Shown: piece by piece, positions 1 through 26,162 of the stretch | Layout of the letters: every line of letters begins with the position of its first letter | How positions within the stretch are numbered: the stretch's first letter is position 1 | From: Cyanophora paradoxa CCMP329 | Lineage: Eukaryota; Plantae; Glaucophyta | Direction: 5' to 3' | DNA: 64,000 nt | Assembly (NCBI GenBank): GCA_004431415.1 | Contig: QPMI01000109.1 | Coordinates: forward strand, 62,001 to 126,000 | Program-made: the position numbers and the translations under genes | The notes under the pieces: model-generated | Seen by the model: the letters and a program-made list of their open reading frames with translations, nothing else | The model's database searches: none | What the model was told of the DNA's origin: nothing

Positions 1-3000
1 GGAGGCGGAGAGGCCACGAGCTGCGTGCGATGCGCAAATCCTGACGTGCGTCTGCTGTGCGATGGCAGCTGCAGCTGCAGTCGCGAAACGCATTTGTGCG
101 GATCCTGATGTTGGATGCTGGCGCACATGCGATTGCAGATTTCCGCCGCGATTGTCTTTTTCAGTGTAGTTCTTATTATCGTGGCCGCTGGCGTAATGTC
201 GTGGTTTGCAATTCGATCTGCCTTTACGTGAGTGACTGCCATTTACATGTCGACGTCCCCAGTGGGCCGACCTGACATGGATTCCGTTCGCAGTACTTCC
301 TCTCAAGTTTCCGTCATCCTCCGCATCCTTATCAACCACCTTCAGTGCCCTATATTTTATTCGACGTGCTGCAATTGCACGGGCGCGCGGTGTTCTGAAG
401 CTTTTGCGCATGCCTCCCTCAGATTCAATAGCTTCGTGCAATCAATCCCGCTTCGGTGGCCAGAGGTGATCGCCCGCATCCTCCGCATCGGCGGCTCCGC
501 AAACAGTCCGTTCACGTCGACATTCCGCATACTTAGCGTCTCGACTACAAGCCTCTGAGCGGACGTCGCGTGTCCGCAGATCCCATGGACGCATTCATCT
601 CAATCGACTGCATCATGGCCGAGCGGCCGGTGAGGCACTGTTAGACGCGGTCTCGATCGTGAATTCAAACGGGTTGATCATACTTGTGATTTAACACGCA
701 GTACCAACGCGAGCTGGTGTACTTTTACAAAGGTTCGCGTACTTTCACGAGTATGATAATGAGTTCAGTTGATCACATCTTAAAGCCGAACTAAGAAGCC
801 CGCACGTGAATCAGCTGCGGGATATCTCTTTCTGCCTCTCCTTGCCATCAGTCTGGTGCGGCAATCCGCCATATAGCTACGTAGCTAGACCTGCTTGCGT
901 TCGAAGCTGAAGTGCTTATATCTTTTCATTTTTGAAGCCTGTGGTTGCCGTGTCGATCATGGCCTGGTTTTCAGTCTTCCGTGCACGACGGGAAGCTCGG
1001 CGTTCAAGTTGTGACCTGAGCCAGTGCGCGCAATCGCCCGTATTCTTGTGTTCGAATTCGAGCTGTGATGCCTCCCGCCCGCCCAGGGGTACCGGCACCC
1101 CTGGTCCCAAGTCAAACTCAATGAAGCCGCTGAATTCGATGCATTCAAAAGTCAGTCCCGCGGCATCGGTATCAGACCACACAGTTGCAGCATGCGCAGA
1201 TCTAGACGACGCCAGCTTAAGACAAGACGGCCCCACGAACATTGCCCGGAAGCGCCGGCTGGAGGTGCCCTCTACTTCACCTATCGTTTTTGTATGGGTC
1301 CACCTATCTATATATATATATATCTAGATTTATGCTTGTTTCCGGGTATAAATATTTCAATTTGCATCCGGACACAAAAATTTAGTCGCCTTCGCAGCGG
1401 TCTGACAGCACATTGTCTTTGATTGCGAGGCGGGTTTCGCAAACGGTGTGGCCACATCGCGAAGTGTGAGTCCTGTTTACATTCAATGCCAGCAATAGCT
1501 GTGGCGCTATTCGTTTGTTACATTTTCAGCGTCGCCCTGCAGCTGGATGCAGTCATTGAGACACGCACACTCGGCTCGCAGGAATTCGAGTTCGACCTTC
1601 ACGGCCCTCCGACAGCCTAGCCTTGTCGGCATCATCTCTCCTTCTCAACGCTTCGAGCCTTCGTGGCCTGATTATTACGTCGTCATAACGATGGTCTCTA
1701 TTTTCCTGGTGATCACGTGCATGGTTTCCGTCCTCTTGCTGGCATTTTTTGCGGCTCTCATTATCACTACAACCGTTGACGTGCACATCTCATGCTGCGT
1801 GCACGTGCACGTAGGTCTTTCCGATGGTCGCGGCCAAGGCACTGGACATCTTCCGCTGCAAGACCCTGTCCGGCGATGGATTAACCAAGTCCTTCGTTCG
1901 TAGCAGCATGAATATCCTGGTGAGGCCTGGCCGGACGAATTAGAATTCGAGGCTGTGCATGTCACGCATGTGATCATCTATGCGCGCACAGTGCTTCTCG
2001 GACGAGCACAAGAGCTGGCTTGCGTCAGTGGGAGCGCCGGGCGTCATTCTCATTGTTGTCGGCGTCCCCGTTACTGCGTCCGCTGTTGTCGTTGCCGGGC
2101 GCAAGGAGCGCTACAGGAATCCAACTTTCGCGTTCCGCTTTGGGTCAGCGAGTTTGAACTCGATCGCGAGTCGAATTAACGAAGGCAAACTTCGACAACA
2201 GGTTCTTGCTTCAAGGGTATCAGTCACGATTCTATGGATGGGAAGTGGTGCAGATTTGGCGGAAGGTTTGCGATGACGGGCCGGCGCCCTTCTTATATAT
2301 CACAACAGCAATTTAAGCGATGGTCGCCTGCTTCCAACGTTAGAGGTTTACGCGCCTGTTTGGCTCAGATTGTCGTAATTGTGGCGTCGGTTTTCTTGGC
2401 AGACTCTCCTGACGAACTGGTGCGTATATACTTCAGCATTATGAACATGATCAGATCGCACATGCTGCTCCCCAGTCATGCATGCGCATGCGTTCATTCA
2501 AGCACTGATAAACGGCTTGCAGGCCCTCGTCGCTTTGGCATTCTTCATTGTCAACGCTTACGTCGATCTCTACGTTCGGCCGTTCCGCGTGCGCATGCGC
2601 GTCGCATCATAAAATTAGTCGATCAAAACTCCAACAGGATGCCGTTCTGAACACGATCAACCTGACATCGTGGGCCGTAAACCTCCTCACCATCTACTGT
2701 GGCTTAGGTAAGAGTTTACCATCTATTGCTTTCATCGCTGTTTCATACTTACTATTATAATACCGCTTAGTTTACCGCAACATTTCGTCCGCTTCAGACT
2801 CGGCGGTTCGTCTATGATCTGAAGGCCCCACTCCAGTCCCCGTCTTGTACATGTGCCTGCGGCCGCGCGAACTTACTTCCTTTCTTCTAGACGATGACGG
2901 TTACTGTTTTGGTCGCGCTGGCCAACATTGCCTTTCTCGCGCAAGTGGCGGCCACGCTTTTCCGGGCCGTCATCATTCTTGCCCTCCAAAAGGTTGCGTT

Positions 3001-17722: not shown

Positions 17723-20700
17723 CTACAGGCGGGCGACGATGTTGCTGGAGCAGTCCGTGCTGCCGGGGCAGGTCTTGGAGCAGTCGGTGCCAGAGTAGAA
17801 GGGCGCGGCGGCGCGGCCGGCGTTGCAGGAGCAGGCGCCGCTGATGGGGTCGGGGACGCCGCCGTTGCGGCAGCGGGAGGCCTCCTGGGGCTCGTCGTCG
17901 CAGTAGATGCCGGAGTAGGGGTCCGCGCATGCGCACTTGACGGTGGCGTCGTCGAAGGCGCCCCGGCCCTTGCAGGGGTCCCCGTACAGCGCGAGGAACG
18001 ACTGCCGCCTGTACGTCCCGCACGGCGCGTACGGCTTCGTCTCGTTGAAGACCAGCGTGTACCTGCGAAGTGGCGGAGTCAGCTTAAGCTTGCGATCCGG
18101 ATCGGGCCCGGGGGGCGAGGGAGGTTAAGCGGGGGGCGGACTCGGTGCCTGTGATGTCGCGGGAGACGAGGGAGCAGGCCTTGGCGGGGAGCTGCGCGAC
18201 GCTCAGGTCCACGAGCCGCAGCTTCAGCACCTGCTCGTAGCCGCTGTTCAGGTACGCGCTCTCCGGGTACGCGATCTTCTTCGAGTCCGGCGGGTAGTAC
18301 TCGAACGCCAGGTGGTTCCCGTCTGCCCGCCCCCGCGTCACAGAGCGGATCGATCTCGCGGGGGCGCGGGGGCCGGGGGCGGGGCACCGTCGGAGATGAA
18401 GGGGAGGACGGGGAGGCGGGCGGTGCGCTTGGTGCCCTTGTAGTAGGAGCCGAACTCGTACTCGAAGGCGGTCGCCGCGGGGTCCGCCTCCGCCAGGTCC
18501 AGCACCCGCACCGCCGTGTACGTCGACCTGCGCGCGGGGGGCGGAGGAGGGCGGAGGAGGGCGGGGGGGGGCGTGAGACGGGGGGAGACGGGGCCCGGCC
18601 CGGGGCGGGCGAGGGGGCGGGGCCGGGGGCGGGCCAGGCAAGGAGGAAGCGGCCGCTGGCGGAGGTGCGGAGCTCGTAGGGGGTCGAGAAGGTCAGGTCC
18701 ACCCCCGCCGCCGGCCGCACCATCGTCCGGTTCACCGCGTACCGCCGCGCCACGCTCCGCCCTGCCCCGCGCGCGACCCCGAGGCCAGACGGTCAGAGGC
18801 CGGCGGCGGCGCAGACAAGGGGGGCGGGGCGGGGCGGGGCGGGCCGGTGATGTAGAGGTCGGAGGTGCCGGGCGGGTTGTAGATGGAGATGTCCGTGAAG
18901 GCCGGGCCCTGCGGGTCGTACACCTGCGCGGCCCGGGCCCGAGGCCCGGCGTCGGCGGGGAGACATCGCGGGAGGGCGGGGGCGGGGGCGGGCCTTGGAG
19001 TTGTTGCGGGCGGCGCTGTAGCTGTCGTAGTCCTCGGGGTCCGCGGGGACGCCCTCCCACGCCCGCGTCGCCGTCGGGCTCATCTGCCCGCGCGCGGCGC
19101 TCAGCGGCCGCCTCCGGGGGCCCGGGCCGGCGGGGCGGGTCGGGGGCGGACGCGGAGGACGAAGGCGGGGCTGGGGCTGGCGGCCTCGCCGGTGCTGTAC
19201 GTCGGCAGCAGCGTCTCCCGGTCGAAGGGCACGACGAGGACCATGGAGCGCGTGTCGAAGGCCGCGAAGGGGACGCTCGTGTAGGGCGAGGCGGCCGTCC
19301 CGTTGGCGACGGAGGCGGCGCCGTACGCGGTGGCGGCGCCGGCGGCGTCGATGTTGGAGGAGAGGAGGGCGCGGCGGCAGCGGGAGGAGCCGAAGCCGAG
19401 GGCCGGCTCCGCCCACGCGAGCTGCCACGCGCCGGCGACGAGGCGGGCGAGGTACAGCACGGCGCTCGTCTTGCAGTCGCCCGCCGCCCCCGCGATCTTG
19501 CACATCCCCGTCCCCGCCGCGTCTGCCCCGAGGTCAGCGCCGCGCGGCCGAATGAAGCGGCGGGCGGGCCCTTCTCGATGAAGGAGAGGCAGCCGGCGAG
19601 GAGGGTGCCGTTCACGGAGAAGGCGGCGGCGCTGCTCATGAAGAGCTGGTCCCTGGCCGCCGCCCGCTCCGCCGCGTCCACCAGCACCGTCCCCCGCCCC
19701 GTCTCGGGGTTCCCCTGCTCCACGCTCAGCCCCTCCCGAGGGAGGGCGGGGCCGGGGGGCGGGCGCGCGTCGGGCCCGATGGGGTAGACGACGCCGGCGG
19801 CGGCGACGAAGCCGCTCCGCGTGCTCCACGCCACCGGCTCCGCAGCCTCCTGCGTCAGCAGGTCCCGCGTCCCCAGCGGCCGCGCCCACGTCCTGCGGGG
19901 AGACGGCGCCCGTGAGCCGAGTTCGAGGGAAGAGCGGGTGGGGTGGGAAGGGGAGAATGGGGGGTACCAGGCGGAGTCCTCGGCGTACTTGTAGGGGTAC
20001 GAGCAGGCCTTGTACTTGTTACGCCAGGCGACGACGCGGCTGGCGTCCATGAAGCCCAGCAGCCGCCCGTCCGGCGCCCAGCCGTACGCTGCGCGGCGCG
20101 CGCGGCCCGTCTGAGGGGAGGGCGCAGAAGCGGGAGGGGGCCCGGCCGGGCCGGCAGGCGCACAGCGGGCGTTCTTGGAGGCGTCAGTGTTGCAGGCCAG
20201 GCACGAGTCGACGTAGCTCGTCCGCACCGTCCGCGTCTTGTCCGCGGGGTAGACCTGCGTCCCGCCCAATCTGCACCGAGCTCGAGCACGAGCGGCGAAC
20301 TGCAAGGCCGCACCCAGAGGGATGAGCGGACGTCGCGCGGGGAGGCGGCGGCCCACATGGCCGGCGTGGCGTCGCCGACGAGCATGAAGGCGCAGCCGGC
20401 GCCGGCGGGGCTGAAGAGGCCGCGGGCGGGGCGGAGGCGGTAGGAGGGGAGCCAGGTGTTGGTGGCCCGCGGGGCGAGGCTCCCGTCGAAGAGGAGCGTT
20501 GGCTGCCGCTGCACCGGCTCGTCGAACCCGGTCCCCTGCGCCTGTGCCGCCCCGCCCCGGTGGGCCCGCGCCGCGCCACGGCAAGGGAACGCTGGCGCGC
20601 CTTCATGAGGACGAAGTTGCCGAAGACGTCACCGGCGGAGAGCCAGACGGTGCTGGCGCGCCCCGCCGGCTGCTTCTTGGAGAAGGCGACCGCGCGGACG

Positions 20701-23700
20701 GCCCCCGTGAAGAGGCTCAGCGTCACCGTCTCCAGCGGCGACGCGTACAGCCCGCTGCGCGTGTCGTACACCTGCCGCCCGACGCGTGAGCGCGGGGGGC
20801 GGAGGGGAGGGCGAGCCCGGGGCGGACGCGGAGGACGCCGCTCTGCGTTCCGACGGCGACGAAGGGGCCGCTCGGGTGCACCGCGATCGCCCCCGCCTGC
20901 GCCCCGAACGCTGCGCCCCAGGCGAAGCGAAGCGAATCGATCTCTCGGAGAAGGGAGCGTTGCCTGCGGCTGGGAGGGGGCGGAGGGGCACCGTTGAGGT
21001 CGTTGCCGTAGGAGCAGTCGAGCTCGGCGATGGGCCAGACGCTGGCGACGGGGAGCCCGTACTTGTCCGTCACCCCCTGCGCCCCGCCCCGCGTCAGACT
21101 CGAGAGCATTCGAGCCGCCGCCAACACGGCAGCGCGCGCGCCGCGTTGATGGTGAGGGTGGAGTAGAAGAGGGTGTGCCTGCGCGGCGCGCCGCGGTGAG
21201 GCCGTGCGCGGAGGGGCCCGGCCCGGCCCGGCGCGCCCAAGAAGAGGACAACGCGGACCGGACGCAGAGGGGGTCGTAGCCGACGGGCGAGCGCATCTTC
21301 GTCGCGAAGACGGCCCCGTAGCCGGCCTTCGCCATCGGCACCCCCTGCTCCTCCCCCGCCTGCCCCCCGGGCGCATCAGCGGAGAGAGGAGGCGGGGCGG
21401 GGCGGGCCGGGGCGGGGCGGGGCGGGGCGGACGGCGTCGTAGGCGTTGCGGGTGTCGGGGCTCGCCTCGTTGACGAAGCCGGCGAGGAGGAACCCCCGGT
21501 CCTTGATGCGCGGGTAGTCCTCCCCCAGCAGCGACTCCAGCGTCGTCACCGGCGGCTTCGCCAGCGAGTGGTTCGCCAGCTGCCCGCCCCTCAGCCGCCG
21601 CGAACTCGGGTGCGCGGTGGGCGGGGGGCGGCGGCACCCTGTTGTAGGAGTCGATGGTGACGTTGACGGGCTGGGAGGCGGGGAGGGGCGCCGCGGGCAG
21701 GCTGATGGCGAGCGAGAACATCTCGAGGGCGCCCTCCGTCGCCGCGTTCCCCCGCGCGTCGCCCCCGATCTGCACGCCGCGCGTGAACGCGATCAGAATC
21801 TACGACGCCGCTCGATAAGATGCCGGGCCCGCCTTGATCTTGTCGTTCACGATGAAGAAGAGGGCGGAGCAGTCGCCGGCGGTGATCATGCGGTCGTTGT
21901 TGTAGCCCCAGTCGACGCGCCCCGTGGCGGGGTAGGCGGCCCGCAGCGCCGGCTCGACGTTGAAGCGCGCCCAGAGCTTGATGGGCGCCGTCGTGTCCGC
22001 CGAGTCGTACACGTACTGCGCGGCGCGCGGGCGGTGAGAAGGCGGCGGAAGTTCCGGGTTTCTAGAGTCGCCTGCGCCGGCCGGGGCGCACGAGGTAGAG
22101 GTAGTTGGAGTGGTCGCGGGCGTTGCGGGGCCAGGCCCAGACGGCCTCCTGCCCCGTCGTGAGGTAGCACGTCGTCGTGCTGAGGAGCACCTGGGCCCCC
22201 ATCGGCTGCGAGGCCGCTTGCCACTCGCCCGCGCCCGGCGCGAAGAAGGAGGTGCCCGGGAACTCCGTCCAGTCGCCGATCACGTTGAGCAGCCGCAGGT
22301 CCTCTGCCGCGGCCGCTTCAGGAAAGAATACTCGGTGGAAGGACTCAAAGAGAGAGGGCGGACCGTTCCGGAGGGAGAGGGCAGTGATGGTCGCCCCTGC
22401 AGGGATCCCGTGAGCGGCCGAAGTCGAGAGCGGAACCAAAATATAGATCGTGAACTTGGGCCGGGGGCCCACCGGGGGTGACGGCGGCGTCGTACTTGGC
22501 CCAGGCCTTGCTCGGCAGGTTCACGTAGAAGCTGGCGGCGGTCAACGTCAAGAGGCGCAGGAGCGATCGCCGGACCGAGCGCGAGCGGCGGCACCGATCG
22601 CGGGTGAAGGAGCGCGTGACCTCCCGCCCGTCGCTCACGAAGCTCGCCGTCCGCACGAACACGTTCCCTGCGCGGCGGGGTGCGGCGGGGCGGGGGCCTC
22701 ACGGTCAGGAGAGGCAGCGAGCGGGGCCGGGCCGGGGCCGGGGCGGGGCGGGCGGGCCGTTGAAGTCGACGACGGCGTCGAGGAAGCCGTCGAGGTCGAC
22801 CTCGACCTCCTGCCCGCCCGCCGGCCCGCCGGCCGGGGTCGGGGCAAGCGGGGGTCTGGGGCGAGGAGCGGGCGGCGCGCGCGCACGGCCTCGCCGGTGG
22901 GGATGAAGCGCCGCGTCGGCGGCGACCGCACGCTCTCCTGCGCGGGCGAGGTCAGCCTGGGCCAGGCCTAGGGGCGCGGGCCCGGGTCGGCACCGCGTGG
23001 CCGGTGAAGAGGGAGTCGGCGGTGCGCTTGATGACGGGCTTGGAGAGGCGGTCGTTGGAGACGTCCCACACGTTCGCCGCGATCCGCACCTGCCGCCCGC
23101 CTCATCGGTCACCCAATGCGGGCGCCGGAGCTCAAAGAGAGAGGGCGCCGCGCGCCATGACGACGTCGTTGTCTAGGTCCGTGGTCTCCCGCCACCTCAG
23201 GAGGACGACGTTCGCCAGGTAGTTGTTGTTCTCCGAGAAGGCCGCCTGCACGCGCGCGGCCCCGGGCACTCAGTGCTGCTCCGACTTGATTCCCGGCGGC
23301 TTGGGAGCCAGGGATCGAGCGCGGCTCAGCTGCGCAGGGGCACCATGGGGAAGACAAGGGTATACTGCTGGCGCGACGACGAGGCGAGCTCGCGCAGGTT
23401 GATCGACTCGTCCACCCCCGCCGTCGCCGCCGCCAGCACGTCCCGCCCAAAGCTCAGCGCCCCGCGCCGGGCGCCAGCGCCCCCGCCCTCCCCGCCCCGC
23501 AGCCGCCCCGCCCCCGCCGCCGTCGCCGTCGCCGCGGCCGCTCCCCCGCCGCCCCCGGGCCCGCTCGTGCCGCCGCCGCCGCCGGCGTCGAGGAGAGTGC
23601 GGCGGCGGGCAAGGGAGGCGGTTCCGCTGGGGACGGTGGTGCTGCCCTCGATGTAGGCGCCCTGCGTGTCGAAGACGAAGTCGCGGAGGGCGTTGTACGA

Positions 23701-26162
23701 GGAGACGAGGTTCTGCGCGTTCGCCGTGAACTGCGTCGAGTTCGTCGCCAGCACGCCCAGCAGCACGGCCAGCTGCTTGTCCTCGTCGAAGGCCGCGCGC
23801 GCCGAGCCGACCGCCTGCCGCTGGTTCGACGAGCGCAGCGACTCCTGCAGCTCCTTGTACGCCCGCTCGATCTGCGCCTTCTGGGCGCTGATGAGGATGT
23901 TCTGCGCCTCGAGCTGCGTGTAGGCGATCGTGAGGTTCGTGTACGTCGCGTTCAGCTTCGCGTTCGACACGCTCAGGTCCGCCAGCGCCTGCGCGGGGCC
24001 GCCGCCGCGCCGTCAGGTCGCCCTCGCGCTCGCGCTCGGGCCGCGCCGGCGGAGGGGGCGGGCCTGCTTCGCGATCTTCTCCTGCTTCTGCGCCTCGTTC
24101 TTCGAGTTCGTCGCGTCGATGGCTGCGCGGTCGAGGGTCAGCTCGCTTTCCTCTCCGCACAGAGTCGCTTGGACGAAAGAGCGTTCGAACGGACCGGCAA
24201 CAATCGCAGCGATGAGGGCTGAGAGCGAAGTCGCGATCAGCGAGCATCCGATCAGGCTTCCGAAGCTTGGACGCGCGGGGGCGGATGCGGACCGGCGATG
24301 ATGGCGACGACGGCGATGGTGGAGACTGTGATCAGCACGGCCTTCGTGAACTGCGGCGGCGCGGGGGCGCAGGCAATCAGGGGCGCCGGGAGGCCCCCCG
24401 GGGCGGGGCGGGGCGGGGCGGGGCGGGGCGGGCCTTGGCGCGCTTGGCGCTGGCGTTGATGAAGCGCTCCTGCTCCTCCGTGATCCGCACCGCCCGCCGG
24501 TTCGCCTCCTTGACCTGCGCGCGCCCCCGGCCCGGCGCTCAGTCGAGAACTAGGCGGCGGCCGCGGGGCGGCGGGGCGGGGGGGGGCGGGCGCACGCGCT
24601 CGCGCCAGTCGAGGGCCTCGCGCAGGTCCTTCCCCGTCAGCAGCTTCGAGGAGGCCTTGCTCCTGCGCCCCCGTCCCCCCACGGCCGCCCGCGTCAGCCG
24701 CCGCCGCCGCCGCCCGAGGCTCGATGGCGTGCGCCGGCGGCGGTCGCGCGCACGAGCCGGACTCGACCCCTGCGAGCGCGGAGAGTCAAAGCCGGGCCGG
24801 CTGCGCGTGGGGGGCGCAGCTGGAAGGGGGGCACGCACATTCCTTGGAGCGGACGAGGAGGCGCGTGTGGAGGCGGATCAGGTCGAGGTCCATCTGCCCG
24901 CGCAGAGTCAGACGGGGCCGGGTCCGCGGTAGGGCGGCCGGGCTTGCTTTGGCGGCGTTGTCGATCTTCTGGATGCCGTCCTGGAAGCTGTCCGTGAAGC
25001 GCATGTAGATCCTGCCGGCCGCGGGCGCCGGGGGGTGAGGGTGGCGCCCGGGGCCGGCTCGGGCAGCGAGGGCCGCGGGGCGGAGCGGGGCGGGGCGGGG
25101 CGGGGCACCAGTTGATGGAGGAGAGGGCTTCGGGGACGGCGGGGGCGTCCTGGTGGAGCACGGGGATCAGCTTCTTGTTCGCCTTCACCGCCAGCTCCAG
25201 CTCCGCCTGGCACTCCCCCGACGCCACCCAGTCTGCCCCGCCCCGCCCCGCCCCGCGTTAACGTTGAGCGCGGGGGAGCGAGGGCGCGGGTGGGGCTGGG
25301 GGGCCCCGGCCCGTACCCGGGCTGAGGATGAAGAGGACATTGTTCGCGCCCTCGATGCCCGCCGCGATCTCCGACCGCCTTTGGGGGGGGGGGGGGGGGG
25401 GGGGTTAGGGTGCGAGGCGAGGCTCTGGAGGCTCCGCGCGCGGCAGCGCACCAGTCTGCGAGGGAGCTCGGCGGTCAGTAATTATAACGGATCGGGCAAG
25501 CCGGGCCCGGCGCGGGTCATCGATGTACGGTGGCGCACCGGAGCTGGGTGGGATGTTCGACCTGGGTTCGGAGGGGCGCGAGGGGTCAGGGAATGAAGGG
25601 GCGGGGGTGTCTGGAGGGATGGGTCGAGCGGACCAATCAACCTGCGCGGGGCGCCGCAAGGTGAGGCTGGGAGGAGCAACTTAGGGGGCAGGGCGGGAGC
25701 CGAACCCAGATCTTGGAGCCGAGCCGCTCGAGCTCCTGGACGACGCGGATCGCGAAGTCCTTGTTCCGCCGCGAGTAGGAGACCATGCTGCGCGCCGCCG
25801 GCTCGGATCCGGCCGGGGGAATTCAAGCGGGACCGGCGGGGCCGCGCGCGCATGTCGTAGTGGTCGCGGATGCCGCGGCGGGCCTCGCCCTTGCGGCCGC
25901 CCGAGGCCGAGGGGTGCCCCTGCGGGTGGGGCAGCGGGCCCGGGTGCGGCTGCGGCTGTGGCTTGGAGGAGGTGTGCGCCACGTCGCCGCCCCCGAAGGG
26001 CCACAACATCGATATCGATGACGGGTGCGGCTGCACGCCGATCCCGAGCCGCGATCAGGTCGCGAGCGAGGCCCCGGCGGAGGTGGGAGGCCTGGGAGAG
26101 GTCGGGCGGGCCGGGGAGGGCACCTCGACCGGCGACAGGACCGCTTCCTGCCGCCCCGCCAT
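17723..26162 (-). CDS. TIR (TIR_2-like) - helical - TM - coiled-coil - divergent WD40 propeller - 2x EGF-like receptor-like protein
   Basis: TIR: YDIMVSYSRRNKDFAIRVVQELERLGSKIWVDWSNIPPSSDWRSEIAAGIEGANNVLFILSPDWVASGECQAELELAVKANKKLIPV. Then DLDLIRLHTRLLVRSKE..KLLTGKDLREALDW..TEEQERFINAS; TM AVLITVSTIAVVAIIAALIAAIVAA; WD-like strands AIAVHPSGPFVAVGTQSGVLRVYD, AVRAVAFS, WAPDGRLL; cap ACSLVSRDITGTE..PYAPC; EGF-like CKGRGAFDDATVKCACADPYSGIYC and CRNGGVPDPISGACSC..YSGTDC. Stop at 17723; start could be 26009, 26162 or 26241. Confidence 0.85.

Follow-up and report, generated by a model that had tools for sequence, protein, structure and literature searches.

A predicted type II TIR–WD40 membrane protein of probable bacterial descent encoded by an intron-rich gene of Cyanophora paradoxa

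The minus strand of the window (the whole 64,000-nucleotide stretch of Cyanophora paradoxa DNA analyzed here) encodes, from 26162 to 17726, one protein of 1761 residues, with the start codon at 26162 and the stop end at 17723/17726. The protein corresponds to the EukProt entry EP00741 Cyanophora paradoxa P000734 (tig00000441_g707.t1, 1761 aa; hereafter P0002), which maps to the window in 40 exact blocks with 100% identity. The architecture of this glaucophyte protein is already public in the form of this unannotated, uncharacterized gene model. From the N-terminus to the C-terminus, it consists of the following parts:

17726..26162, minus strand: whole coding region of P0002, ~44 exons (exact P0002 mapping, splice borders and RNA joints)
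25854..26162, minus strand: Pro/Gly/His-rich N-terminal extension, residues 1-72, two exons (P0002 mapping and RNA)
24965..25788, minus strand: TIR domain, residues 73-189, several exons including micro-exons (Pfam TIR_2)
25201..25203, minus strand: codon of Glu143 in the CQAEL motif, translating to E
24351..24964, minus strand: bacterial-type helical linker, residues 190-268 (identity to bacterial TIR-WD40 proteins)
24120..24350, minus strand: single transmembrane helix, ~residues 272-298, three exons (Kyte-Doolittle)
24219-24196, minus strand: 24-nt exon within the transmembrane helix (exon mapping)
23344..24117, minus strand: extracytoplasmic stalk, residues 299-530, mostly one 642-nt exon (P0002 mapping and RNA)
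20993..23245, minus strand: first outer region, residues 531-980, beta-rich (collinear with the paralogue P0001)
18141..20911, minus strand: WD40-derived region, residues 981-1649 (Pfam, blade HMM, hhalign)
18020..18190, minus strand: bacterial-type C-terminal Cys cap, residues ~1634-1664, across the last intron (cap HMM, hhalign)
17726..17976, minus strand: two EGF-like Cys modules and the C-terminus, residues 1679-1753, 10 Cys (sub-threshold Pfam matches and signature)

Gene structure and transcription

The gene contains ~43 spliceosomal introns of 47-107 nt, with GT/GC..AG borders at all 37 resolvable junctions, and spliced RNA contigs from three runs (two studies) omit exactly the modelled introns, which are retained in the DNA run X15. 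Together with the exact mapping of P0002, these data bear out the single spliced open reading frame of the initial annotation, in a transcribed nuclear gene rich in introns. Four micro-exons were read from the DNA, and the following joints were observed in spliced contigs:

25641-25634, minus strand: 8-nt micro-exon, TIR part
25561-25539, minus strand: 23-nt micro-exon, TIR part
25455-25452, minus strand: 4-nt micro-exon, TIR part
24769-24754, minus strand: 16-nt micro-exon, linker part
20537/20597, 20910/20992, 22015/22092, 22303/22364, 22395/22472, minus strand: RNA joints
22808/22886, 22936/22993, 23088/23155, 23244/23343, minus strand: RNA joints, continued

One contig (X1 record 1, 1931 nt) spans 18 exons, from that of the stalk (~23447) to ~20319; two others (X1 record 2 and X3 record 19) extend, respectively, 356 and 282 nt upstream, beyond 23986; and X1 record 3 covers 25852-26030, with both flanks spliced. 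Judging by their length, X1 record 2 and X3 record 19 appear to extend into the linker exons; in the bin 24201-24400, an X3 depth of 1.52 would fit 76 exonic bases of the transmembrane exons at the depth of the contig. Over the stalk, RNA is present at 23555-23992 and 23344-23447, and RNA and DNA contigs alike break in its low-complexity part. No RNA contig links the TIR exons (≥24840) with the linker exons (≤24661), because GC-rich repeats break the contigs.

The model could join two distinct transcripts, one for a TIR-transmembrane gene (26162-~23990) and one for a secreted or outer-domain gene (~23245-17726), given that no RNA contig crosses 23448-23554, which encodes a Gly/Ala stretch, and that the sole close paralogue model, P0001 (tig00001027_g6381.t1), begins at the outer domain. 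P0001 shares with P0002 the outer domain, the cap and the EGF modules (64-65% identity) but lacks the TIR, the transmembrane helix and residues 1010-1142 of P0002. However, the P0001 model starts mid-exon, with a short non-homologous beginning, so it is probably 5'-truncated, and the RNA gap lies inside the single 642-nt exon, which is open throughout and has RNA on both sides, with contigs running 282-356 nt upstream from it. Furthermore, the outer part by itself lacks a signal peptide, bacterial relatives show exactly the same order of parts within one protein, and the bacterial cap near the C-terminus points to joint inheritance of the whole. Such an artefactual fusion is, accordingly, very improbable.

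The TIR domain, linker and membrane helix

The N-terminal TIR domain named in the initial annotation is recognized by Pfam TIR_2 (E 5.1e-25, 88.8 bits, with a cut-off of 28) and, consistent with the bacterial type assigned to it there, groups by sequence with bacterial TIR_2 domains, not with TLR TIRs. All 13 invariant columns of the family are retained in the algal TIR, including the glutamate that had been placed at the catalytic position of NAD-cleaving TIRs. This residue, Glu143, occupies a column that is invariant among 83 aligned family members and, in a PDB profile search, is matched to the conserved Glu of Cat1, a CRISPR-associated TIR protein. In the AlphaFold2 model, the TIR has a pLDDT of 94, and its Foldseek neighbours include Hydra TRR-2 (TMt 0.89), SARM1 (0.82), AbTir (0.80), MyD88 (0.80) and TLR1/2/6.

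Most of the bacterial TIRs studied to date are NADases. Whether the algal TIR is an active NADase we regard as evenly balanced. A TIR that, like those of TLRs and MyD88, serves as a protein-protein scaffold and recruits other Cyanophora TIR proteins without cleaving NAD+ is a less probable, although conceivable, alternative: scaffold TIRs (Hydra TRR-2, MyD88, TLR1/2/6) are structurally as close as enzyme TIRs, but the invariance of the catalytic-position Glu, the predominance of NADases among bacterial TIRs and the enzymatic nature of the nearest sequence relatives in defence libraries (ThsB, TIR-SAVED and SPARTA TIR), and of Cat1, all speak against it.

The TIR and linker together (98% of residues 73-270) show 40-44% identity to bacterial TIR-WD40 proteins (E 1e-39 to 1e-26), which are found in at least 487 species of Chloroflexota, filamentous cyanobacteria and others. 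The motifs HTRLLVR..EW, LL.G.DL..A..W and Q..FI.AS were correctly taken to be of bacterial type; positions H145/T146/R147 and W155 are invariant. AlphaFold2 predicts two helices in the linker followed by a long helix, and none of the solved structures found by PDB profile search and Foldseek covers the linker after the TIR. No characterized member of the bacterial family was found in the literature, and no conserved neighbour gene was found in the bacterial loci, consistent with sensing and action being combined in one protein.

The only hydrophobic helix, as initially annotated, has its Kyte-Doolittle peak (3.01) at residues 279-297 and is included in one continuous helix, residues 254-334, in the AlphaFold2 model. 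It leads into an Ala/Gln/Asn-rich coiled-coil-like helix, the coiled coil noted earlier, and then into a Gly/Ala low-complexity stretch (~23450-23560). The type II orientation proposed before, with the TIR inside and the outer part outside, is also what we predict from the sequence, because the charges fit the positive-inside rule (four K/R and no D/E before the helix, net ~0 after it), there is no signal peptide in the N-terminal extension (residues 1-72), and 24 Cys lie outside compared to 1 inside. By contrast, the argument from N-glycosylation sequons fails: the 10 N-x-S/T sites outside the membrane do not exceed the chance expectation (shuffle mean 8.4 +/- 2.6).

A single transmembrane helix is located 200-220 residues past the TIR start in ~70 of 80 bacterial relatives (206 in the alga), and bacterial relatives carry an Ala/Gln-rich segment where the algal stalk lies. 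Therefore, the “inverted Toll” topology, with the TIR in and the WD40 domain out, is bacterial heritage and not, as the initial annotation had it, the result of eukaryotic remodelling.

EGF-like modules and numerous Cys residues usually belong to exported or surface domains. This and the apparent lack, on inspection by eye, of a recognizable C-terminal retention motif weigh against an internal membrane as the site of the protein (ER, Golgi, vacuole or cyanelle envelope), from which it would sense a luminal cue. No sequence feature points specifically to the plasma membrane, and a type II signal-anchor does no more than put the C-terminal part into the secretory lumen. We consider an internal location possible but rather unlikely.

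The outer domain and its origin

The first outer region (residues 531-980) has no Pfam match and no lead in the ESM Atlas, and a HMMER search over 1.84 billion representatives retrieved only P0001, with no relative outside Cyanophora. For the outer domain as a whole, P0001 and the Cyanophora fragment P0019 (tig00020952_g16481.t1) are the only relatives in HMMER, apart from the match of the bacterial WD40 protein P0018 to the WD40 region (E 7.5e-6). Within 18141..20911, the blades are:

residues 988-1060, minus strand: two canonical WD40 blades
residues 1173-1195, 1300-1311, 1532-1554 and 1589-1600, minus strand: fainter blades

Residues 984-1040 match twelve beta-propeller Pfam families, all below the cut-off (best E 3.6e-6); the blade HMM sum is 13.7 bits, compared to at most 7.1 among 500 shuffles (0/500); and hhalign aligns the region with its bacterial counterpart at P 1.9e-6 and 90% probability (reversed-sequence control, P 0.33). 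Thus, of the WD-like strands in the initial annotation, some are detectable as blades, but only 2-4 of a possible 12-14 are statistically recognizable; AlphaFold2 yields a pLDDT of 25 for the outer domain.

The final motif A-C-x-x-V-x-R-D-I-T..E...P-Y..C had been taken for a bacterial signature and indeed is one. An HMM derived from the C-termini of 11 bacterial proteins gives P0002 13.7 bits and P0001 15.8 bits, none of 2000 shuffles reaches 13.7 bits, the second hhalign match (P 3.2e-5) ends at the end of the template, and blastp gives E 0.002. The two EGF-like modules noted earlier are represented in the last exon by sub-threshold matches (EGF_TEN, E 9e-5; EGF_2 and JAG1 EGF2, weak), with the signature C-x-C-x2-[GP]-[FYW]-x4-8-C present in one module (residues 1692-1703). 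Such modules occur in none of the bacterial relatives, in which the ORFs stop within ~15 residues past the cap. Introns, including the 4-, 8- and 16-base micro-exons, and EGF modules are the eukaryotic additions, in agreement with the gains proposed before.

Conceivably, only the TIR-linker-transmembrane-stalk half is bacterial, whereas the outer domain is a Cyanophora-specific invention with a convergent or chance likeness to WD40 and the cap. In its favour are the absence of relatives for residues 531-980, the frequency of WD40 repeats in eukaryotes and the modest cap and blade scores (10-16 bits). Nevertheless, both the order of the matches and the ends at which they lie agree with the bacterial proteins, the cap directly follows the last blade and precedes the EGF modules, it is kept in both paralogues, and the shuffled and reversed controls fail to reproduce the matches, making this possibility improbable. 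The algal protein probably descends from the bacterial family end to end. That it is a single protein with bacterial ancestry over its whole length appears highly likely, and its acquisition from bacteria as a complete unit, in the form of a single-pass type II membrane protein, likely. The trees, in which the algal sequence has a very long branch (1.9 changes per site), do not separate an endosymbiotic from another horizontal origin, or the donor phyla.

In the proposed layout, a cytosolic TIR would be connected by the helical linker to one long helix passing through the membrane into the coiled stalk, beyond which the WD40-derived outer domain, closed by the Cys cap, would have diverged in the alga almost past recognition, with the two EGF-like modules added after the cap. 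The outer part may bind a ligand, either extracellular or in the secretory lumen, and thereby alter how the rigid trans-membrane helices pack or cluster. This would bring TIR domains together, which could then cleave NAD+ via Glu143, yielding a signal nucleotide or depleting NAD+. That ligand-driven clustering is the switch is a tentative suggestion.

Comparison with known systems

The closest counterparts, bacterial TIR-linker-TM-coil-WD40 proteins (such as P0005 from a Chloroflexi MAG, P0013 from Leptolyngbya sp. RL_3_1 and those of loci L001-L080), are annotated merely as “TIR domain-containing protein” or “WD40 repeat protein”. They share with the algal protein every invariant TIR_2 residue, the linker motifs, the transmembrane helix ~205 residues past the TIR start, the Ala/Gln-rich helix, WD40 blades and the A-C...C cap. 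Only the alga has ~43 introns, the 72-residue N-terminal extension, a longer stalk with the Gly/Ala stretch, and EGF-like modules after the cap; in its outer domain, most blades are unrecognizable and ~450 residues are orphan.

NAD-cleaving TIRs (SARM1, plant TIR receptors, AbTir, Thoeris ThsB, SPARTA TIR-APAZ, Cat1) have the fold and the catalytic-position Glu in common with the algal protein, and its TIR matches profiles of Cat1 (E 1.4e-12), SARM1 (~4e-8) and AbTIR, as well as the ThsB, TIR-SAVED and SPARTA TIR models of the defence libraries, but these six include no transmembrane receptor that has an outer domain. Animal Toll-like/IL-1 receptors are similarly single-pass, with a cytosolic TIR close in fold to the algal model (TMt 0.65-0.89) and a large outer domain, which binds ligands in animals. 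Their polarity, however, is opposite, with the TIR at the C-terminus (type I) rather than at the N-terminus (type II), and the algal protein has no signal peptide and no LRR or Ig in the ectodomain; the ancestry it has in common with these receptors is that of the TIR superfamily and extends no further.

Gene structure and expression

Reading the minus strand of the window in three frames from 26400 to 17400 reveals short islands of coding sequence, with the frame shifting from one island to the next, as expected for an intron-rich gene; the G+C content of the window is ~74%. A natural open stretch of 754 codons (window 18341-20602, minus strand), used as the search query, returned P0001, a Cyanophora paralogue (tig00001027_g6381.t1) with a public model that starts at the outer domain, and, via P0001, the 1761-amino acid protein P0002 (EukProt EP00741 Cyanophora paradoxa P000734, gene tig00000441_g707.t1). 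Between 26162 and 17726, P0002 maps to the window at 100% identity in 40 exact blocks, and the model starts and stops at the very coordinates proposed in the initial annotation. The gene contains about 43 introns, with lengths of 47-107 nt (median, 74 nt), with GT/GC..AG borders at all 37 resolvable junctions. Part of the TIR domain and the linker is encoded by five micro-exons, each with canonical AG/GT borders:

25641-25634, minus strand: micro-exon of 8 nt, read directly from the DNA
25561-25539, minus strand: micro-exon of 23 nt, read directly from the DNA
25455-25452, minus strand: micro-exon of 4 nt, read directly from the DNA
24769-24754, minus strand: micro-exon of 16 nt, read directly from the DNA
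24219-24196, minus strand: micro-exon of 24 nt

The lengths of these exons are below what contigs can show. The sequence W-V-D-W-x-x-I-P-x-x-x-D-W-x-x-E-I, as it appears in the bacterial relatives, is restored only with all micro-exons included, and because the bacterial-type reading needs every one of them, they are very likely genuine.

The gene itself is real and expressed, and its transcripts are spliced. Contigs of sequencing runs X1 and X3 (one study) and X2 (another study) lack the introns that are present in contigs of run X15, which identifies the first three as RNA and the last as DNA. Nine listed RNA joints, from 20537|20597 to 23244|23343, match exon borders of the model. Judging by the lengths of its pieces, the 1931-nt record 1 of X1 runs from ~23447 in the exon encoding the stalk through 18 exons to ~20319. 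Record 2 of X1 and record 19 of X3 begin in the stalk exon (23614 and 23872, respectively, to 23986) and continue 5' for another 356 and 282 nt, which we infer to be the summed length of the transmembrane (TM) and linker exons. At the depth of that X3 contig, 3.9, a stretch of 76 exonic bases would account for the value of 1.52 that X3 shows in the bin 24201-24400. The TIR exon (25113-25226) and the 5' exon (25852-26030) are represented in further contigs, each with spliced flanks. None of the RNA contigs crosses the Gly/Ala low-complexity stretch 23448-23554, which sits within one open 642-nt stalk exon and at which the DNA run X15 also breaks; between the exons lying at 24840 or higher and those at 24661 or lower, no contig provides a direct join. 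GC-rich low complexity occurs at about 23450-23560 (Gly/Ala-coding, in the stalk exon) and at 24697-24716 (a GCC-type repeat, in an intron); at both repeats, contig depth is 130-250, and RNA and DNA assemblies alike break. Bacterial contamination was ruled out because the gene carries introns and yields spliced RNA and because the algal window has 74% GC.

The TIR domain, the linker and the membrane helix

The anatomy of the protein put forward in the initial annotation was right in outline, and several of its parts were located on P0002 as follows:

Residues 73-189: TIR_2 (Pfam), E-value 5.1e-25, 88.8 bits (cut-off, 28)
Codon 25203-25201, minus strand: Glu143, a family-wide invariant residue that aligns with the conserved Glu of Cat1
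Residues 279-297: hydrophobic membrane helix, single
Last 85 residues: two EGF-like modules with 10 Cys, all within 75 residues

The Pfam TIR model also matches P0002 (E-value 1.9e-5). Residues 73-270 align with bacterial proteins of 970-1310 amino acids at 40-44% identity and 96-98% coverage, with E-values from 1e-39 to 1e-26; these proteins combine TIR_2 with many WD40 and beta-propeller Pfam families, and those with a named source derive from metagenome-assembled genomes (MAGs) of Chloroflexi and Leptolyngbya. The alignment with P0002 runs without a break from the TIR domain across the linker motifs and the membrane helix into the beginning of an Ala/Gln-rich helix. P0002 retains all 13 invariant columns of an alignment of 83 sequences (A3), the TIR_2 residues invariant in the family (SYSR, W.DW, IP, SP, S..C..E and K) and, directly behind the TIR domain, the linker motifs HTR...R..EW, LL.G..L..A..W and Q..[FY]I.AS; H145, T146, R147 and W155 are invariant in a further family alignment (A1). 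A bacterial scan with one genome per species identified at least 487 loci of this family, of which the best 80 belong mostly to Anaerolineae/Chloroflexota and filamentous cyanobacteria, along with some Actinomycetota, Verrucomicrobiota and a few others. No family-specific model was found in PADLOC or NCBIfam, where the similarity is to TIR in general, and no conserved neighbor gene was found at the 80 bacterial loci, which fits a single protein that both senses and acts.

Two observations concern the relatives themselves. Multi-TIR forms exist among them, with five or three tandem TIR-plus-linker units preceding the membrane helix in P0003 (Almyronema sp. MAG, 1499 amino acids), which ends in a CHASE2-type membrane domain rather than WD40, and in P0004 (1191 amino acids). 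In Leptolyngbya sp. BL-A-14, near-identical family copies reside on the chromosome and on a 50-kb plasmid (loci L025 and L071), and the plasmid copy would be a possible route of horizontal spread.

Several features of P0002 predict an N-in, C-out (type II) orientation, in line with what the initial annotation had claimed: the flank before the membrane helix contains four Lys/Arg and no acidic residues, and the net charge after the helix is close to zero; no signal peptide was found; and a single Cys precedes the helix, compared with 24 that follow it. The N-glycosylation sequons that had been cited as well carry no such information, given that 10 were observed vs 8.4 +/- 2.6 in shuffled sequences, that is, without enrichment. 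The same annotation attributed the “inverted Toll” topology to remodelling in a eukaryote. That part did not hold: a single TM segment lies 199-237 residues past the TIR start in ~70 of the 80 bacterial ORFs and at 206 residues in P0002, so that the predicted plan with TIR inside and WD40 outside is a property of the bacterial family.

An AlphaFold2 model of the inner half, built from 83 sequences (pLDDT 94), shows the TIR fold followed by two helices of the linker; a further helix, which crosses the membrane, is unbroken between residues 254 and 334. Foldseek matches of this model cover the TIR part only (TM-score 0.89 for Hydra TRR-2, 0.82 for SARM1, 0.80 for MyD88 and 0.80 for AbTir), and those of a profile search against the PDB likewise end at the TIR domain (Cat1, E-value 1.4e-12; SARM1, ~4e-8); thus, the linker is without a solved relative. 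The glutamate of the CQAEL motif, initially placed at the position used by NADases, is indeed Glu143, in an invariant column. P0002 shares with the NAD+-cleaving TIR enzymes this Glu of the S..C..E-L segment, located in the helix that follows strand C. The main alternative to an enzymatic role is that the TIR domain of P0002 serves as a scaffold. A prediction of self-association for two copies of residues 68-335 scored 0.04, which we count neither for nor against binding.

The bacterial ancestry of P0002 is clear. In quick and careful maximum-likelihood trees of the TIR domain plus linker (81 rows, 206 columns), P0002 sits on a branch of 1.9 changes with no supported neighbors, and constraining it to the main cyanobacterial clade was not rejected (p-AU 0.83). 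We therefore claim neither an endosymbiotic nor another horizontal origin: of the earlier suggestion of an endosymbiotic or horizontally acquired gene, the bacterial source stands, and the trees do not separate the two routes.

WD40-like blades and a probable propeller in the outer half

A HMMER search with the outer half against 1.84 billion representatives returned only three matches: P0001 (64% identity), the Cyanophora fragment P0019, and one bacterial STAND-TM-WD40 protein, the repeats of which match residues 964-1026 (E-value 7.5e-6). When the outer half was cut into ten overlapping pieces, twelve beta-propeller families of Pfam matched at 984-1040 only, all far under their cut-offs. P0002 was also scored with a blade profile built on 945 repeats taken from the bacterial relatives: three blades were positive and together gave 13.7 bits, compared with 7.1 bits for the best of 500 shuffles and none for the reversed sequence. 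Overall, P0002 contains two clear WD40 blades and a few faint ones, with no Pfam model at its cut-off.

Many of the bacterial relatives, a large subset, share the C-terminal motif A-C-x-x-x-x-R-N-L-T-x-x-E-W...Y...C-P. The cap pattern tested, A-C-x3-4-R-[ND]-[LI]-T-x2-E-[WY]...Y...C behind the last blade, is present in P0002 at the expected position, directly ahead of the EGF-like modules. With a profile of 11 bacterial ends, the cap scores 13.7 bits in P0002, a value reached by none of 2000 shuffles, and 15.8 bits in P0001. Profile-profile alignment (hhalign) of P0002 and P0001 with 12 bacterial relatives, taken over their WD40 half, yielded two collinear matches, one at residues 989-1193 (188 columns, P 1.9e-6, probability 90%) and the other at residues 1524-1662 (P 3.2e-5, probability 73%), which reaches the end of the template; the reversed query gave P 0.33. 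Taken together, the blades, the cap and the collinear matches are best explained by the entire protein having descended from a single bacterial gene.

A propeller fold is inferred for the outer half. Residues 531-980 had no match in the Pfam pieces or, for 531-960, in the feature search of the ESM Atlas; in that search, the closest clusters for residues 561-1650 were bacterial WD40 clusters (scores 0.88-0.93), a result that serves as a lead only. AlphaFold2 on residues 531-1700, aligned with P0001 only, produced no usable fold (pLDDT 24.9).

The EGF-like modules match Pfam EGF models below threshold, with E-values of ~1e-4 (EGF_TEN, 22.6 bits, cut-off 65; EGF_2, 11.8 bits, cut-off 22.1). In the first module, C-x-C-x2-P-Y-x4-C at 1692-1703 fits the classical signature C-x-C-x2-[GP]-[FYW]-x4-8-C.

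Among the Cyanophora paralogues, the P0001 model lacks residues 1010-1142 of P0002 (window 20311-20768), that is, two RNA-supported exons encoding ~133 residues, including the second canonical WD40 blade, which were either lost in P0001 or skipped by its gene model. P0019 (tig00020952_g16481.t1, 130 amino acids), related to residues 1434-1539 (E-value 1.7e-4, 35% identity), probably represents part of another paralogue that is more distantly related.

A possible receptor and its relation to Toll-like receptors

P0002 is a new eukaryotic variant of an uncharacterized bacterial family of putative TIR membrane sensors. It was already public as a gene model without annotation. In the literature searched, we found nothing tying Cyanophora to the TIR domain, the sole paper there that names both Cyanophora paradoxa and TIR being unrelated; the 2019 paper on the Cyanophora genome contains no mention of TIR, WD40 or EGF, and no description of the bacterial TM-TIR-WD40 family was found among the literature checked. 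TIR domains are a common currency of immunity across bacteria, plants and animals, and the present case bears on how eukaryotes acquired TIR receptors: beyond a lone domain, what is probably a complete bacterial sensor-effector unit is present in the nuclear genome of an early-branching alga, fully “eukaryotized” by 43 introns, micro-exons and EGF modules, with the catalytic-site residue retained. The analysis also brings to notice a large bacterial family, with at least 487 species representatives, mostly from filamentous Chloroflexota and cyanobacteria, and a predicted topology with the WD40 repeats outside the cytoplasm and TIR inside.

TIR enzymes, such as SARM1, plant TIRs, AbTir and Cat1, generally need self-association to form the active site, and for this reason, we propose clustering driven by a ligand. 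The ligand would cluster the outer domains, and the clustered outer domains would then assemble the TIR domains, leading to NAD+ cleavage. Given the rigid helix that the model places between the cytosolic linker and the outer stalk, the signal might be passed on by helix packing or clustering. Tentatively, and with the odds against it in our estimate, a eukaryote might have taken over a complete bacterial TM TIR sensor as a working receptor for innate immunity or cell recognition, in which a ligand on the WD40-derived/EGF ectodomain causes NAD+ cleavage via the rigid TM helix. If the TIR domain is active, P0002 would be a simple, testable model for the trans-membrane control of a TIR NADase. 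If the entire proposal is true, the hundreds of bacterial relatives would span the cell envelope as sensors whose WD40 domain is periplasmic or outer, and the alga would possess a Toll-like pathway that has the opposite polarity and arose independently. Toll-like receptors are type I proteins with a signal peptide, an LRR ectodomain and a C-terminal TIR domain, whereas P0002 carries its TIR domain at the N-terminus, has no signal peptide and shows no LRR in Pfam; the likeness between the two is one of logic only.
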